From NCBI GenBank assembly GCA_004764695.1, contig SMSO01000006.1:1131859-1195858 (forward strand): a DNA stretch of 64,000 nt. Reading direction: 5' to 3'. The translations under genes were made by a program, and so were the position numbers. Of the stretch, positions 58,323 through 63,998 are shown one piece after another (the stretch's first letter is position 1; every line of letters begins with the position of its first letter). A model generated the notes under the pieces. The model was not told the origin of the DNA. It did not search any database and saw only the letters and a program-made list of their open reading frames with translations. The stretch is from Schizochytrium sp. TIO01 (taxonomy: Eukaryota > Protista > Bigyra: Labyrinthulomycetes).

Positions 58323-59777
58323 TTAATATGGGCTTGGGTTATTGTACGAATACTGCGTTGAGTGAGGCTGCTGCGGTTGCTGTGGCTGTTGGTATTGCTG
58401 CGAGTACGACGGATGTTGTACGCCCGGGGGTCCCTGCGCATACGTGGCCGAATAAGGCGCAGACGGCGCTGTACCATATGAAGAAGCAGCGCTACTACTG
58501 CCATGCACTGAAGTGGGGCTTGTGGAATACTGCTGGGCAGGAGAATTGTACATGTGTCCCGAACTTTGGCTAGCAGGAGCCGTGTAACTACTTGCCAGGT
58601 GTGACGAAGGGTATTGAGAGTAAGTCTGCGACGGGGTGGAGGCAGGAAGAGGCATCGTAGAAGTGGTGCTACTGGTGTTGTACAAAGATGTAATTGACTG
58701 AGGGTCAAAAGGAGGTGTCGGGGATGAAGGAGGAGGAGTATAGGTACTTGAAGGAGCAGCATAGCTATCAAAAGGGTTAGATCCGTTCGAAGATGAGTAC
58801 AGGTTGTCATAGGAATGACTCGGGGCTGATGAAGCCATCATCGAAGGAGATGTAGCTGAAGGAGTAGAAGAAGTCAGGTGCATGGAGCCCATAGTCGACG
58901 AAAGGTAATTCACATCAGAGCCAGCACCGTATGAAGCAGAAGCCGAGGGAGCACTGTAGTGTGAGGGAGGTGCTTGCGGTGCAGGAGTGCTGTAGTAAGA
59001 GTCATTTCCAAGATTTGAGCGTGTTGACGCGCTTGCAGCCCAGTTGAACTCTCCATTTGTAGGTACTGTAGCAGTTAAGGTGTTTGCTGACGCGGTTGTC
59101 GCAATGGAAGGACTGAAAGAAGGCTGCGATGAGCTCGCAAATGGGTCTTCTCCACCCCAACCAGAATATGAAGCTGCCACAGGGGCCGCAGCCTGAGCAA
59201 TTGCCTTACCAGTAGGCGCACCTGACTTTTTGCGCTGAGCTTGGAAATCTTTCCACAAGGCCTCTTCGTCGCCTTCGTCATCATCATCACTTGAGTCTCC
59301 ACGAGCAGAGGGTGCGGTCTTATCAGGTTTGTTACCAACGAAATCGTTAAAGCTCATGCGTTTCACATCGCTCGTATCTGCTGCACGCTCAGCATCGCGT
59401 TTGCTCCTGCGCATTTCCTCAAGCTGCTCGAGATTGATGCGTTGAAGGCGATGGAAGGGCACACCATCTACATTAAGATCATAAATGTAGCCCTCGAAAT
59501 GATCACGGATAAAGACCTCCAGAAGCCGACCCCCTGCTCGAAATTGATGATTAAAGTCACCAGTGAACATTTTCTTCTTGTGCAGAACAAGCTGATTGTT
59601 CAACTTAATCTCACGCTTACCACGCACCAAAGAGTGCTTGAGTTCAACCTCATTGGTTTTTAGATCCGGAAGGCACGCAAATTTCCACGTCACTTTAACC
59701 TTGGACCCTTTGACACGCTTGCCAACGTACTCCTTCTCCACGTAAAAGCCAAAAACATCTCCTGACCCACGGCTCAT
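58323..59777 (-). CDS. FAIM1-like beta-sandwich domain protein with S/P/Y/Q-rich tail
   Basis: VTWKF...EVELKHSLVRGKREIKLN...YIYDLNVDG resembles the FAIM repeat (W...IEFEHG..SGKR.V.VDG...Y.L.ING); tail contains DPF and NPF motifs. Confidence 0.7.
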   Translation of the reverse strand: MSRGSGDVFGFYVEKEYVGKRVKGSKVKVTWKFACLPDLKTNEVELKHSLVRGKREIKLNNQLVLHKKKMFTGDFNHQFRAGGRLLEVFIRDHFEGYIYDLNVDGVPFHRLQRINLEQLEEMRRSKRDAERAADTSDVKRMSFNDFVGNKPDKTAPSARGDSSDDDDEGDEEALWKDFQAQRKKSGAPTGKAIAQAAAPVAASYSGWGGEDPFASSSQPSFSPSIATTASANTLTATVPTNGEFNWAASASTRSNLGNDSYYSTPAPQAPPSHYSAPSASASYGAGSDVNYLSSTMGSMHLTSSTPSATSPSMMASSAPSHSYDNLYSSSNGSNPFDSYAAPSSTYTPPPSSPTPPFDPQSITSLYNTSSTTSTMPLPASTPSQTYSQYPSSHLASSYTAPASQSSGHMYNSPAQQYSTSPTSVHGSSSAASSYGTAPSAPYSATYAQGPPGVQHPSYSQQYQQPQQPQQPHSTQYSYNNPSPY

Positions 59778-60538
59778 GATGCCTTGAAGATTTGTCTACG
59801 CTAGCTACTAATGACAAAGATGTAGAGTTGTCGAAGATGCAGATATGCTCGAGGTCGCTGGCTAGCGACTTGGCTATCTACTTTTCTTCTTTGGATTAGC
59901 GCGCTCGCTTCTTCTCGTTTGCTAACCTGCTTCTTTTTTTTCTTTTTCTTTTTCTACCGATCTCCGCTGCCAGGCTGGTGCCTCGACGATATTCCTCGGT
60001 CTAGCAGGCCTCCTTCCGCAGAAGGTGATCTCCCGAGAGATGGAGTTTGTTCTGTGCTCGTCGATTGCGCGGCCTTTGGCTCCAGGCAGGCGCGGCGATG
60101 GACGATCCGAATTGAACGATCAGGCATTTGTAATCGTGCCTTTGTCTCCATCATCGTCATCCTTTAATCTTATTAGGAGCCTATGTTTTATTTCTATTTT
60201 GTAGTAATGTACAAACAACAAAGCGCTATTATTATAGCGGTACTTGTTCTCTTTTTCCTTTTCGTTTTCTTTCAAACTTAAAGATTATCGCTCATATCCC
60301 TGGCTAAATTCAAAATGTCCCGAATTATGTCCGCAAAATATTTTTGACTAAAATCGCCAGAAAACCCTGTAAAGATCTAAAATCGTAAATTTGATTGTAT
60401 GATCATGTTGAAACAACTGTTTCCCTAAACTGAGCACGATTTCTTTGCAGAAGCAAGCGTATTGAGCTCACGCTACTCGTCCAAAAATTGGCTCACAACC
60501 TCGATAAAACGGCCTAATAGGGCAAATAGGCCTTTAGA

Positions 60539-60565
60539 TTTTCAGGACGTAATACGTCCTGAAAA
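60539..60565. repeat. Perfect 13-bp inverted repeat TTTTCAGGACGTA-A-TACGTCCTGAAAA, candidate transposon (sub)terminal palindrome
   Basis: Direct reading; lies about 195 bp beyond the transposase stop codon. Confidence 0.85.
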
Positions 60566-60758
60566 ACTGAACTTTGCATTAGCGAAAACGTATAAGAGTT
60601 TGGGTATTTTGGTTAGTTTAATAGTTTAGTTAATATAAACAATAGTAGTTTATTTTTGCGTTGCTCAAGTCGGAGAAACATCTAAAGATGAAGATTTCGC
60701 GATAAATGAAGATTTTATATAAGCTAAATGTAATATTAATTTTTTGTGTGGATAATTT

Positions 60759-63700
60759 TTATGTATGGAAATGAGGAATCGTAATTTGCTCCTCGCTATG
60801 AAATTTGATATTGCAATGCTTACAAATGTAAGCATTGCAAGTTTGGCACCATCGAGTGGTCTTCCGTGGATTACGATATGGATGGTCTGGCGCCGATCCC
60901 CGTTCGCAATCAACACAACACATAATGCAGGCTCCCCTCTTCTTGAACTTGCCCACGCATTCATGCTGTCCAACTAAACGAGTTTGTAGAAGTTCTGGGA
61001 GTCGTGACTTACTGTATTGATACTGTTGCGGCGATTCTAGCGAGGCTGTAGAAGTAGGCGAAATGGTGTTATCAGTTGCTCTCCAGCAGAATTCTATGTC
61101 AGACATGGAACAAGTATTGTCAAATGGGTAAAGGGATTCCATTGAGACAACCCTAATTTCTTCTGCGAGACTACTTAGATAGCCTCTATAGCAGCACAGA
61201 TTTTTGCGTAGCATTGACCATTCCGTAATTGTTTTACACTTCGATGTGAGGTTCCGATGCTCCATTGAGAGGAGCTGATACGCTCGAAACGAGTTGTATA
61301 AAATATAGTCAATGAATGTTAAACAAACCAAAGCATTAGGAGTCAGCTTTGAAGTACGAATGCTCGCTCCATTGATAGTTTTTCTAGTGATATCAACTCC
61401 GCCCATCATCTTATTCCAGACACTAACAGTCAAAGGCAGTAGGCGTTTGCAAGGCGGTGGGGTTCCGTTGACCAGCACGTCGTCACTATGCCTCCGCCAA
61501 AGCTGCAAAGCGAGTTCGGCACTGTGTAAATCCACAGCATAACCCCAGTCTGGTGATTGGTCTGGTGCAAAACGAGGAAACCTACCAAGTTGATTGCCAT
61601 AAGCAAAGCCCATGTATTCATCACTCAACGCTTTGAAATACTCACGCCATGACTGGCGCTGGGCACATGAGACTTTGATTAGCACTCCTTGCATGATTTC
61701 CTCAGTTGTGGCATATATAAGGAGGGTGTAAGGGACATCTAAAGTAGCTGCATGATGGATACACTGAGTTCGAAACGACGGATTTGGGACTAACGACTCG
61801 AACTCACTTGTTCCACATTTGCATTCGTGCCACGCACTCTGACCAGCAACTCGAGACTTTAACTCATCTATAGTTTTGGCATTTGTACTTGTTTTGATTT
61901 CTAAGGCAAATACATCATCTATAACAAAATTGTTTCCTTCTAGCTCTGTATTCCTCAAAAGAACAGCTGCACCGTCGGGTGAGTCTGCTACAAATTGGAC
62001 TTCCCGATTAATAATCAGACCATATTTGCGTAGCTGGAGAATACAGAATTTATTGGAACTTGCTTTCTTAACCCATCTGGAAAGATCTTTCGCCACGTCT
62101 GCCTCATTTTCAATCCCCAAAGCCAGTGGGTTTTTATGATTCGAAAACCCATTTTGAATAGGCTTCATAAACCAACTTGGTGTGATTGTTCTAAGAAATG
62201 ATTTCTGGCGTTCCTCGAAAGTGCATGTATGGTTATCATCAATCGTTTCAGAATTGTGCAAGGGAAAGCTGTCCCCAATGTCACTACTGTCACTCATTTC
62301 CAGCAGGTCTTGAGTAGTGGACTCCTGAGATGCATGCTGAGGGTGTATGTCTTCCTGTAAGGAAGATAGTTCTCCGTTTGAGACCGTTTCATGATCTATA
62401 GTTCTTGATAGGATGTCTACGATCCGCTTGGCTAGTTCGATCTTTTTGCCATCAGTCTTTGCACCTACATCCAAAGAAAGTAACTTTTGGATAAGCTCAT
62501 TTTTGTTCATACGTTGCATCCAGTATGTATATTCAAGAATAAGACCCTCCCCTTGACGCTTCCTTTTATATTGCTTCTGAGCTCCTTCAGATGAATAAGA
62601 AGAACGCTTATTAGGACGGGGGAATAATGAGATAATTCGTTGCGGGTCAAGACAAGCGAACGATTTCACATCGTGGTGTAAGGCCATAAGCTCATCCGAA
62701 TGAACGAATGGAGCATTTTTAAAGTTGATACAGGTAAAAGCACCGGTGCTTGTAATTCTAAATTGCCGAGCCATAAACCAGTCAGGTGTTCTTTGGGAAA
62801 TTGTCATTGAGAAGATATTGGCGTTCACAAGGTTAATTTTATGATTAGCTTGTGCCTTCATCTTATATGTACTCATGTCACACGGCTCTATCTCAATCTC
62901 AGCATGTGGAACGCGCTTTACACCACCTGGTGAGTTCCAATCTACTCCAGCAGGAAGTACTTCGTAACTCCAAACTTGGTCAGCCAAACAACGGTCGTTC
63001 GTGATGAGTTGTGCAACTCTATGCTTTCCCGCACCGTGACGCATCATCATCGCAGCAACAAAATCGCCATTCTGGTATCTTTGAGCGGTGTAGGTGCTTC
63101 GACGGCCATTCCTGTTAATGATAGTTTGACTTCCCCTCACAGGCGTAGCAGGAACTGGTCCTTCAACATCTATAAACGGGAATGACGAGGTCTTGCGACA
63201 AGTTCCAAGAAATTTGACTCCCTTTGACTGAAGAATTTGAGTTATGTTTGTTGCACGATCCATATCCTGAGGTTTCGATAATGCCAGATAACCACGATCA
63301 ATGAATACACGAAGCTCTGAAGACACAGACGCATCAGGGCTTTCTCCTGACTCCCCCTCATTCAGAAAATCTATTGCCTTGCTTACAATTTTATGAACAG
63401 GTGAGTGGGAAGTCTCTAACCGTGGTACTAGGAGCAGACCTGTACCCACAGAGCACACAAGATGTATCACGGGTTTCTGTTTTTTTGTTTTCGTTGGAAT
63501 GGTACGAATTCCAAAATTCTCCCACTGAGGAGAACCATAGGGAAGCTTGTCGTCATCAAGATCGATCCAAGTGGTTTTAGGGACAAAGAACATCTTCACC
63601 CAATGGCGCTGAGCAGCACCTCCCATTTCATGGATGATCGGACTTGAGGAGCATACTCTAGCCTCGCGTGACCCTTTTGTTGCCCGATTGGACTTGTCCA

Positions 63701-63998
63701 GGCTCATTGCCTTTCGAACTTTTGAATAGGATACCGTATGGGCTAGATTCCAATGACCTGGTGGGTCCTCAAGACACTCCGAGAACGACTTTCCTGCAAC
63801 TCGCAGAGAAATTTCAACGAGAAGGTAGGCACGGAAATCTTGATCCGTGATAGAAAATGGCGGAGATGCGTTTGAGCTAAGACTATTCAACCATTCCTTA
63901 ACTGCAATCACCCAGCCTGGCGGCAAACAAATCTTGAAACTATCAAGCCTGGTAAATTTGTAGTTATTGTCAACACGAAGAACCTTTCGAATCCTTTT
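60759..63998 (-). CDS. piggyBac-type DDD transposase with inserted YqaJ/lambda-exonuclease and SAP-like domains and a C-terminal Cys-rich domain; 5' end outside the window
   Basis: Frame is open to the window edge (KRIRKV...LDSFKICLPP). piggyBac motifs IDLDDDKLPY, VFIDRGY, GVKFLGTCRK, VWNKMMGGVD, IDYILYNSF, CIMC...KTTRWCQTCNAYICKHC..FH. YqaJ motifs QRTPDWFMARQFRITST, GIENE, GLII...ADSPDG, LEIK, TQ. Confidence 0.88.
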   Translation of the reverse strand, partial: KRIRKVLRVDNNYKFTRLDSFKICLPPGWVIAVKEWLNSLSSNASPPFSITDQDFRAYLLVEISLRVAGKSFSECLEDPPGHWNLAHTVSYSKVRKAMSLDKSNRATKGSREARVCSSSPIIHEMGGAAQRHWVKMFFVPKTTWIDLDDDKLPYGSPQWENFGIRTIPTKTKKQKPVIHLVCSVGTGLLLVPRLETSHSPVHKIVSKAIDFLNEGESGESPDASVSSELRVFIDRGYLALSKPQDMDRATNITQILQSKGVKFLGTCRKTSSFPFIDVEGPVPATPVRGSQTIINRNGRRSTYTAQRYQNGDFVAAMMMRHGAGKHRVAQLITNDRCLADQVWSYEVLPAGVDWNSPGGVKRVPHAEIEIEPCDMSTYKMKAQANHKINLVNANIFSMTISQRTPDWFMARQFRITSTGAFTCINFKNAPFVHSDELMALHHDVKSFACLDPQRIISLFPRPNKRSSYSSEGAQKQYKRKRQGEGLILEYTYWMQRMNKNELIQKLLSLDVGAKTDGKKIELAKRIVDILSRTIDHETVSNGELSSLQEDIHPQHASQESTTQDLLEMSDSSDIGDSFPLHNSETIDDNHTCTFEERQKSFLRTITPSWFMKPIQNGFSNHKNPLALGIENEADVAKDLSRWVKKASSNKFCILQLRKYGLIINREVQFVADSPDGAAVLLRNTELEGNNFVIDDVFALEIKTSTNAKTIDELKSRVAGQSAWHECKCGTSEFESLVPNPSFRTQCIHHAATLDVPYTLLIYATTEEIMQGVLIKVSCAQRQSWREYFKALSDEYMGFAYGNQLGRFPRFAPDQSPDWGYAVDLHSAELALQLWRRHSDDVLVNGTPPPCKRLLPLTVSVWNKMMGGVDITRKTINGASIRTSKLTPNALVCLTFIDYILYNSFRAYQLLSMEHRNLTSKCKTITEWSMLRKNLCCYRGYLSSLAEEIRVVSMESLYPFDNTCSMSDIEFCWRATDNTISPTSTASLESPQQYQYSKSRLPELLQTRLVGQHECVGKFKKRGACIMCCVDCERGSAPDHPYRNPRKTTRWCQTCNAYICKHCNIKFHSEEQITIPHFHT

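Follow-up and report, generated by a model that had tools for sequence, protein, structure and literature searches.

Within a 64,000-nucleotide stretch of the genome of the labyrinthulomycete Schizochytrium sp. TIO01 (GenBank assembly GCA_004764695.1, contig SMSO01000006.1, positions 1,131,859 to 1,195,858 of the forward strand; hereafter the window), a 4,489-bp DNA transposon was found whose sole gene encodes a transposase of the piggyBac type. Family profiles and a structure model show that a complete PD-(D/E)xK nuclease of the lambda-exonuclease/YqaJ type, spanning approximately amino acids (aa) 454-930, is nested between the second and third aspartates (D2 and D3) of the catalytic aspartate triad (DDD) of this enzyme. 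The element is apparently an autonomous and recently active member of the piggyBac superfamily, as judged from its sequence and that of its other genomic copies. Taken as a whole, the observations are best explained by an active piggyBac transposon with a DDD core and a nested nuclease, the latter probably acting on 5′-phosphorylated ends; we put the probability of this reading at roughly 85%. The data support a lineage of the piggyBac superfamily in which target choice is relaxed to NTAN and the transposase contains a conserved lambda-exonuclease module with a SAP-like part.

The transposase is encoded in a stop-free minus-strand frame that runs from position 60759 to the window edge and continues for 276 bases beyond it, to an ATG at window-equivalent position 64274. 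The full open reading frame (ORF) is 1171 aa long and lies at L001:2260-5775, where position 1 of locus L001 is window position 58500; residue numbers refer to the full 1171-aa protein throughout. A first-pass annotation of the window had reported one stop-free ORF of more than 1055 aa. Its open frame was confirmed, with the correction that the window edge truncates both ORF and element. The codons that it gave for the three aspartates were also correct and correspond, in full numbering, to D240 (63555-63557), D326 (63297-63299) and D961 (61392-61394), with 635 aa between D2 and D3, as it had stated. All of the motifs that it quoted, the C-terminal Cys-rich block included, could be found in the translated ORF; those of the nuclease are QRTPDWFMARQFRITST (from aa 494), GIENE (E724), SPDG (D767), LEIK (E792/K794) and RTQCIHH (Q837). 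The ORF is not a chance frame, because it is identical in seven genomic copies and has 491 homologues at E ≤ 1e-3. Its parts, in order from the N terminus, are as follows.

60759-63998, minus strand: transposase ORF from aa 93 to the stop codon after aa 1171; its first 92 residues are encoded past the window edge.
Window-equivalent 64058-64147, outside the window: N-terminal three-stranded unit, aa 44-73 (W..F...S..G....L.G, then L.YN), which precedes the piggyBac helical domain.
63192-63998, minus strand: aa 93-361, predicted to comprise the N-terminal helical part of piggyBac (DNA binding and dimerisation) together with the first half of its RNase H-like core; D1 (D240) and D2 (D326) are in this segment.
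62955-63191, minus strand: all-beta domain predicted at aa 362-440, in the topological position that the insertion domains of piggyBac and Tn5 occupy.
62724-62915, minus strand: predicted N-terminal part of the nuclease, aa 454-517, with QRTPDWFMARQFRITST (Q494, W499, R503); the superposition of lambda exonuclease begins at 454.
62205-62723, minus strand: insert within the nuclease, aa 518-690, predicted helical and ending in a disordered acidic/Ser-rich linker (aa 630-674).
62391-62537, minus strand: SAP-like helix-turn-helix, aa ~580-628, from the secondary structure of the model (helices at 582-628).
61485-62204, minus strand: predicted catalytic lobe of the nuclease, aa 691-930, from VIA and profile matches.
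62103-62105, 61974-61976, 61899-61901, 61893-61895 and 61764-61766, minus strand: codons of the nuclease residues E724, D767, E792, K794 and Q837, respectively.
61125-61484, minus strand: predicted return to the piggyBac core, aa 931-1050, with WNKMMGGVD carrying D3 (D961), followed by the C-terminal half of the helical DNA-binding/dimerisation domain.
60780-60962, minus strand: C-terminal Cys-rich zinc-finger domain, aa 1105-1165, from profile alignment to the Cys-rich domains of piggyBat and piggyBac.

The N-terminal unit at aa 44-73 is small, confidently modelled and kept in close relatives.

For assignment of the transposase, a profile of 114 relatives (A2) was searched against the PDB sequences. 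This profile matched piggyBat with an E value of 9.6e-18, in two stretches either side of the insert, and T. ni piggyBac with an E value of 2.4e-8, again either side of the insert, and the alignments ran on through the Cys-rich domain. At D1, the family motif lDddkl (D240) pairs with LSLDE of piggyBat; at D2, fiDRgY (D326) pairs with YMDNYY of piggyBat; and at D3, WNKlKGgvD pairs with YNKHMKGVD (piggyBat) and YNQTKGGVD (PQMVMYYNQTKGGVD in piggyBac). Matches of the closer-family profile, A1, to the PDB were far weaker than those of the broad A2. The catalytic triad of T. ni piggyBac is D268/D346/D447; the three aspartates of the family align to these positions, and the overall transposase fold and the C-terminal Cys-rich domain of piggyBac were likewise found. 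Traces of the same identity could be seen with Pfam in other members of the family: zf-Tnp_2 matches two relatives (E 9e-4), and two distant relatives of the same architecture, P0037 and P0046, score 40.7 and 28.3 bits, respectively, on DDE_Tnp_1_7 (PF13843), above its cut-off of 22.4.

An AlphaFold2 model of the whole protein had a mean predicted local distance difference test score of 85.9 and a predicted template-modelling score of 0.82, with disorder confined to residues 1-39, 558-576, 630-674 and 1062-1091. In the PDB, Foldseek ranked the strand-transfer complex of piggyBac first (6x67_C, E 7.7e-6), ahead of Tn5 and piggyBat. Re-alignment to 6x67_C with VIA gave a Z score of 23.6 and a root mean square deviation of 3.4 Å over 372 of 478 residues, pairing model residues 83-1044 with chain residues 117-514; for piggyBat (9c0f_C) the Z score was 20.9. 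Retroviral integrase cores, which comprise ~150 residues, align across model residues 232-1005, so that the RNase H fold is made up of stretches lying before and after the insert.

The insert itself was recognised by fold and by motif. VIA aligned LHK-Exo with a Z score of 13.4 (181 of 194 residues, model 496-901), lambda exonuclease with Z scores of 13.0-13.3 (202-208 of ~226 residues, model 454-928) and mimivirus R354 with a Z score of 12.6, whereas phage exonuclease 3k93, Cas4, SOX, MGME1 and Dna2 scored lower; the Foldseek probability for a fold of the lambda-exonuclease type was 1.00. The A2 profile matched R354 (E 3.7e-4) and LHK-Exo (E 0.007), with SPDG and EIK aligned. Residue by residue, the family sequence sQrtpdWfllRkfriTst pairs with EQRTEEWFAARLGKVTAS of LHK-Exo, and the NE, SpDg and lEiK motifs pair with their LHK-Exo counterparts. 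Thus D767, E792, K794, E724, R503 and Q837 align with LHK-Exo and R354, giving the D...(D/E)xK, NE, QRTxxW..R and YxxQ motifs, and together with the fold matches this establishes the YqaJ/lambda-exonuclease clade fold with its full motif set. The first-pass annotation had placed a YqaJ-type nuclease inside the piggyBac core, and both lines of evidence bear this out: profile matches to piggyBac and piggyBat flank the insert with those to R354 and LHK-Exo inside it, and the structural match to piggyBac extends over 83-1044 (Z 23.6) with that to LHK-Exo and lambda exonuclease contained within 454-928 (Z 13.0-13.4).

Pfam YqaJ (PF09588) matched 2 of 15 close relatives weakly, at best with an E value of 0.006; a free-standing YqaJ gene of this genome, taken as a control, reaches 81.6 bits on that Pfam model. 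That gene encodes 407 aa on the minus strand (L018 1285-2508, G000:C36) and adjoins a fragment of a DSHCT-domain helicase. No significant signal was obtained when the canonical piggyBac-like ORFs of the genome and the free-standing YqaJ were compared with the family profile by hhalign (as single sequences or a 2-sequence alignment), or with 150 relatives by phmmer. These blanks say little, because the comparators are too few and too diverged. A word-indexed homologue search returned the protein itself only.

In the model, the chain proceeds from D2 through a helix (344-350), a strand (354-359) and a beta-rich block (367-439) to the nuclease at ~454-930, after which come a strand (942-947) and the helix that bears D961. 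The insertion domain of piggyBac occupies residues 372-433, after beta5 (PMC7351741). Since the beta block is kept ahead of the nuclease, the latter has been added at the C-terminal junction of the insertion domain, not in place of that domain. The first-pass annotation had located the nuclease at the insertion-domain position; more precisely, the nuclease follows the retained beta domain instead of replacing it.

An insert of ~170 residues, with no counterpart in LHK-Exo in the alignment, in turn separates the first helix of the nuclease from its WFMxP...NE segment. Pfam SAP (PF02037) has no match in this protein. At the aligned position it was detected in relatives, among those of A1 (best E 6.6e-9) and in P0049 and P0062 (28.1 and 26.4 bits, cut-off 23.9), and the Plasmodiophora relative carries the NCBI name "SAP domain-containing protein". 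Matches of A2 to the SAP proteins Tho1, DEK and SIZ1 in the PDB were weak (E 0.07-0.4). Relatives and model together point to a SAP-like, predicted DNA-binding module within the nuclease.

The bounds of the element (L001 1799-6287; window 60298 to window-equivalent 64786) were set by the abrupt loss of similarity between copies on both sides, and perfect 9-bp terminal inverted repeats, CCCTGGCTA and TAGCCAGGG, stand at its ends.

60294-60297, no strand: target-site duplication ATAT, left copy; the same 4 bp occur at both ends, the right copy being at window-equivalent 64787-64790, outside the window.
60298-60306, plus strand: terminal inverted repeat CCCTGGCTA, at the element end 3′ of the ORF; similarity between copies stops exactly here.
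Window-equivalent 64778-64786, outside the window: partner terminal inverted repeat TAGCCAGGG.
60539-60568, no strand: subterminal palindrome TTTTCAGGACGTAATACGTCCTGAAAA, a candidate binding site for the Cys-rich domain.

A palindrome of ~27 bp (core CGGGACGTAATACGTCCCG) occurs once near one element end and twice near the other, the latter two copies lying outside the window. As the Cys-rich domain of piggyBac binds a palindromic-like internal repeat (PMC7351741), these subterminal palindromes may, by analogy, serve as binding sites for the Cys-rich domain here.

A DNA search of the 64-Mb genome recovered seven copies at 99.96-100% identity, together with one decayed copy at 97.6%. The ORFs of the seven copies are 100% identical across 3,516 bp, and the eighth copy is frameshifted. 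All seven full copies lie in different flanking DNA and each has a perfect 4-bp duplication: ATAT (the window copy), ATAA, ATAA, CTAT, TTAG, TTAA and CTAA. That identical copies occur at several loci, each between target duplications, rules out a chimeric assembly and indicates that transposition was very recent. A large family of internal-deletion derivatives was not found in the genome, where 3-4 fragments only were seen. Near-identical DNA is present in 20 public runs, which belong to 10 studies. On one contig, two of the seven copies lie 79 kb apart with different duplications, TTAA and TTAG (G000:C24:5428669-5433163 and 5507819-5512313), an arrangement compatible with local hopping.

Inverted ends flanked by matching 4-bp sequences were also sought in a blind scan. 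The ends already known for the window element came up again, which served as a control, and the same scan revealed CCCTGGATA ends, with duplications CTAA and CTAG, in two lineages whose protein identity is only 38-40%. Pooling these with the seven copies gave nine insertions, all with perfect duplications (ATAT, ATAA twice, CTAT, TTAG, TTAA, CTAA twice and CTAG). The consensus is NTAN, in which the central TA is constant and TTAA occurs once in nine. Two piggyBac characters are thus found at the DNA level, namely the 4-bp target-site duplication (9/9 insertions) and 5′-CCC...GGG-3′ ends with short inverted repeats (CCCTGGCTA/TAGCCAGGG, and CCCTGGATA in the two other lineages). NTAN targeting was treated as a variation within the superfamily, membership of which is decided by homology of the transposase.

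To place the protein among its relatives, phmmer was run exhaustively against 1.84 billion cluster representatives; 35 of the 491 homologues were found at E ≤ 1e-30. About a dozen full-length relatives of 1087-1350 aa align end to end at 30-39% identity. Five alignment blocks (piggyBac N-part, nuclease N motif, nuclease C lobe, piggyBac C-part and Cys-rich domain) were then used as queries against the top 150 representatives. The order piggyBac N-part, nuclease lobe, piggyBac C-part (pbN-nucN-nucC-pbC-CRD, CRD being the Cys-rich domain) was present in 46 of them; the remaining block matches were fragments fitting the same order, and in none of the 150 were the piggyBac halves joined without the nuclease.

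Conservation was counted over the A2 alignment, using for each column only the sequences that cover it. D1, D2 and D3 of the transposase are kept in 56/63, 54/59 and 90/93 sequences, respectively. The nuclease residues are kept to a similar extent (D767 in 93/94, E792 in 86/96, K794 in 89/96, Q837 in 88/91, E724 in 79/84 and R503 in 59/63), and the Cys and His columns of the Cys-rich domain are 95-99% conserved. Retention of both residue sets at 20-35% pairwise identity argues for selection on both active sites, in agreement with the earlier remark that both look intact. In P0003 and P0015 the nuclease residues are gone and the DDD motifs are damaged too, a joint loss such as would arise if neither site is maintained any longer in a dead copy.

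The relatives with a species name belong to Hondaea fermentalgiana, Skeletonema dohrnii, S. menzelii and Plasmodiophora brassicae, and the nearest ESM-Atlas cluster has 56 members, is eukaryotic and has Oomycota as its commonest taxon. The relatives are annotated as hypothetical; the family is widespread yet unannotated in stramenopiles and rhizarians. The Schizochytrium genome itself holds further lineages of the nuclease-bearing piggyBac family, at 26-40% identity. One of these (L028 939-5327, G000:C36; 40% protein identity) has an intact 1175-aa frame, CCCTGGATA inverted ends and a subterminal palindrome of its own, TTGTCTACG...CGTAGACAA. Another (L029 1059-5510, G000:C33; 38%) has the same CCCTGGATA inverted ends and two stops; the duplications of L028 and L029 are CTAA and CTAG. 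More remote members, at 26-34% identity, are L030 (G000:C6:1872410-1876033) and G000:C30:1537840-1540845, with open frames of 1267 and 1309 aa. For the L030 lineage no inverted-repeat and duplication pair was found in the blind scan, and the catalytic residues are degenerate, as are the DDD and nuclease motifs of its relative P0003; these remote members may be old or domesticated copies.

A description of such a fusion could not be found in the full-text literature (piggyBac with YqaJ, lambda exonuclease, Cas4, stramenopiles and diatoms), Repbase and Dfam being outside the scope of the search; within that scope, the suggestion that this is an undescribed piggyBac lineage holds. The element resembles T. 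ni piggyBac and Myotis piggyBat (6X67/6X68, 9C0F) in fold, DDD triad, core-split helical DNA-binding/dimerisation domain, a beta insertion domain after beta5, Cys-rich zinc finger, CCC..GGG ends, 4-bp duplications with a central TA, and subterminal palindromes. It differs from them in the distance from D2 to D3 (635 aa against about 100), in the nuclease and SAP-like module of ~475 aa that precedes the D3 helix, in its NTAN targets, and in a sequence too diverged for DDE_Tnp_1_7. With lambda exonuclease, LHK-Exo and mimivirus R354 it shares the nuclease fold (Z 12.6-13.4, ~90% of chains) and the QRTxxW..R, NE, SPDG, ExK and YxxQ motifs; unlike those enzymes, the nuclease here is embedded in another enzyme and split by the SAP-like insert. 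In Tn7, the PD-(D/E)xK site of TnsA and the RNase H-like DDE site of TnsB cooperate on the two strands at the transposon ends. The principle of two nuclease active sites is the same, but in Tn7 the sites are on two different proteins, TnsA resembles restriction endonucleases and not lambda exonuclease, and homology does not extend beyond the superfold.

Two other DDE transposon groups are associated with a nuclease of this clade. KolobokE, which has 5′-RR..YY-3′ ends and a C/DxxH signature, carries a lambda-exonuclease-like nuclease fused downstream of its transposase (PMC9587614). As in the present element, a DDD/E cut-and-paste transposase is thereby physically joined to a PD-(D/E)xK nuclease and makes 4-bp duplications (PMC9587614); in KolobokE, a member of another superfamily, the nuclease is appended, whereas here it lies within the catalytic core. 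In ISL2EU, also a DDE transposon accompanied by a YqaJ exonuclease, the exonuclease is a separate second ORF (PMC4122938), and its transposase, with a THAP N terminus, belongs to an unrelated superfamily.

The chemistry of piggyBac comprises a 3′ nick, formation and opening of a hairpin, and joining of the 3′ OH to target positions staggered by 4 bp (PMC7351741). The DDD site of the present enzyme would, by homology, carry out the same 3′ nicking, hairpin formation and strand transfer, yielding 5′-phosphorylated ends with 4-nt overhangs on the donor flanks and on the excised element. Enzymes of the lambda-exonuclease type degrade the 5′ strand from 5′-phosphorylated ends. The nested nuclease may thus act 5′→3′ on these ends and strip from the excised element either the 4-nt 5′ overhang left by the donor or a longer part of the non-transferred strand, after which the gap would be filled in. 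Canonical piggyBac needs no such trimming or synthesis, because every site is TTAA: the overhang pairs with the new gap and the donor flanks re-pair. With variable outer bases, the overhang left by a donor at ATAT would not pair fully at a CTAA target, and the perfect duplications at all nine insertions suggest that the old overhang is not incorporated, which favours trimming of the non-transferred 5′ strand. Trimming or resection on the excised element is therefore our preferred mechanism, held tentatively and at somewhat less than even odds. More doubtful is the wider proposal that the nuclease and SAP-like module in the transposase core serve an extra transposition step, removal of the 5′ overhang or non-transferred strand, which would free integration from the TTAA rule in a clade across stramenopiles, alveolates and rhizarians.

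A good but somewhat less likely rival to trimming is the idea, raised in the first-pass annotation, that the nuclease works at the donor site, resecting the 5′-phosphorylated flanks and destroying their complementary 4-nt overhangs. The break would then be repaired by homology with the sister chromatid, so that the donor copy is regained and transposition becomes effectively replicative. The first nick of piggyBac leaves a 5′ phosphate on the flank, the preferred substrate of lambda exonuclease. In piggyBac the insertion domain, to which the nuclease is joined here, borders the channel for flanking and target DNA (PMC7351741); the seven identical copies represent a recent gain in copy number, and YqaJ-type nucleases accompany other DDE transposons, ISL2EU and KolobokE. 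Yet the element encodes no single-strand annealing partner, the 3-4 fragments seen do not amount to the internally deleted family that abortive gap repair leaves, and the relaxed NTAN targets would be left unexplained by donor resection. We consider it unlikely that the PD-(D/E)xK domain instead cuts the non-transferred 5′ strand in place of the hairpin, as in TnsA, leaving the DDD site to nick and join 3′ ends only. Tn7 provides the precedent of TnsA with TnsB, and flush 5′ cuts would also explain perfect duplications at sites other than TTAA. Several members of the lambda exonuclease/Cas4 clade have endonuclease activity as well, which speaks for such a cut. Nevertheless, the best matches in structure and in sequence are to processive 5′-3′ exonucleases (LHK-Exo, lambda exonuclease) and not to endonucleases of the restriction type, TnsA is not in the structural match list, and the beta insertion domain, required for the hairpin route, is retained. 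So is the QRTxxW..R motif, whose Arg is the 5′-phosphate-binding residue in lambda exonuclease.

A DNA-tethering role is suggested by the SAP-like insert, and one could imagine that the nested domain is catalytically irrelevant to transposition, being a structural or DNA-binding scaffold or having some other purpose such as degrading competing DNA. The conservation of D767, E792, K794, E724 and Q837 (90-99%) at 20-35% identity makes this improbable, as does the finding that P0003 and P0015, which lack the nuclease residues, also lack the DDD residues. It is more improbable still, to the point of being scarcely credible, that the element belongs to another superfamily with 4-bp duplications (Kolobok, Sola) or that the ORF is an assembly or read-through artefact of a transposase and a nuclease gene. 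The lack of a direct Pfam match might be taken that way, and Kolobok, too, makes 4-bp TTAA duplications and has, in KolobokE, a lambda-exonuclease-like nuclease. Kolobok identity was rejected on the CCC..GGG ends as opposed to RR..YY, the nested as opposed to downstream nuclease (PMC9587614), the match to the piggyBac fold (Z 23.6) and the profile match to piggyBat (E 9.6e-18); the artefact was rejected on the seven identical copies at different loci and the same single-ORF order in 46 divergent relatives, which belong to other organisms.

Several observations weigh against an active piggyBac transposon with a nested, end-processing nuclease. Strict TTAA targeting, the hallmark of piggyBac, fails, with one of nine duplications being TTAA. 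A Pfam scan of the whole protein and of three pieces returned no relevant family at E ≤ 10, neither DDE_Tnp_1_7 nor YqaJ; the direct match that the first-pass annotation had proposed as a check was thus not obtained, for which reason the domain assignments needed family profiles and structure. A single-sequence phmmer search of the PDB sequences likewise gave no match. The convergence of D240, D326 and D961 on one site is predicted from superposition and alignment, and transcription is conjectural, seven of the public runs with near-identical DNA being no more than guessed to be RNA. The trimming of overhangs is argued by analogy and from nine perfect duplications. The working form of lambda exonuclease is a trimeric ring, and such a ring may not form inside a dimeric transposase.

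The transposases of the piggyBac group are among the best understood and most used in eukaryotes, and their TTAA targeting and seamless excision follow from the 4-nt overhang chemistry. The lineage described here is apparently active, comprises at least 46 divergent clusters of full architecture, is found in diatoms, labyrinthulomycetes, oomycetes and plasmodiophorids, and is mostly invisible to Pfam; the family profile could be used for annotating such elements in protist genomes. It offers a case for how transposases recruit end-processing enzymes, being the third independent association of a YqaJ-type nuclease with a DDE transposon, after ISL2EU and KolobokE. If overhang removal does free integration from the TTAA rule, this would be a new cut-and-paste pathway with two active sites, in a superfamily of major use in genome engineering. 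A possible route would then be opened to piggyBac-type vectors with relaxed target choice or altered outcomes at the donor site.

Other piggyBac-type genes were seen in the same genome. Two ORFs, L015 28-2826 (G000:C31) and L016 778-3309 (G000:C13), are uninterrupted and of canonical piggyBac type, with DDE_Tnp_1_7 extending over ~400 aa (112.9 and 75.3 bits, respectively); both have very long N-terminal regions rich in Lys, Ser and Asp, and they provide an internal contrast to the split architecture. A 1059-aa ORF with a Cys-rich tail (L019 3138-6317, G000:C13) matches the first 95 positions only of DDE_Tnp_1_7 and looks like a domesticated or degenerate piggyBac-derived gene. Beside the window element, ~0.5 kb from its end, a minus-strand ORF of 484 aa is located at window positions 58323-59777, where the GC skew is strong (0.19-0.27).

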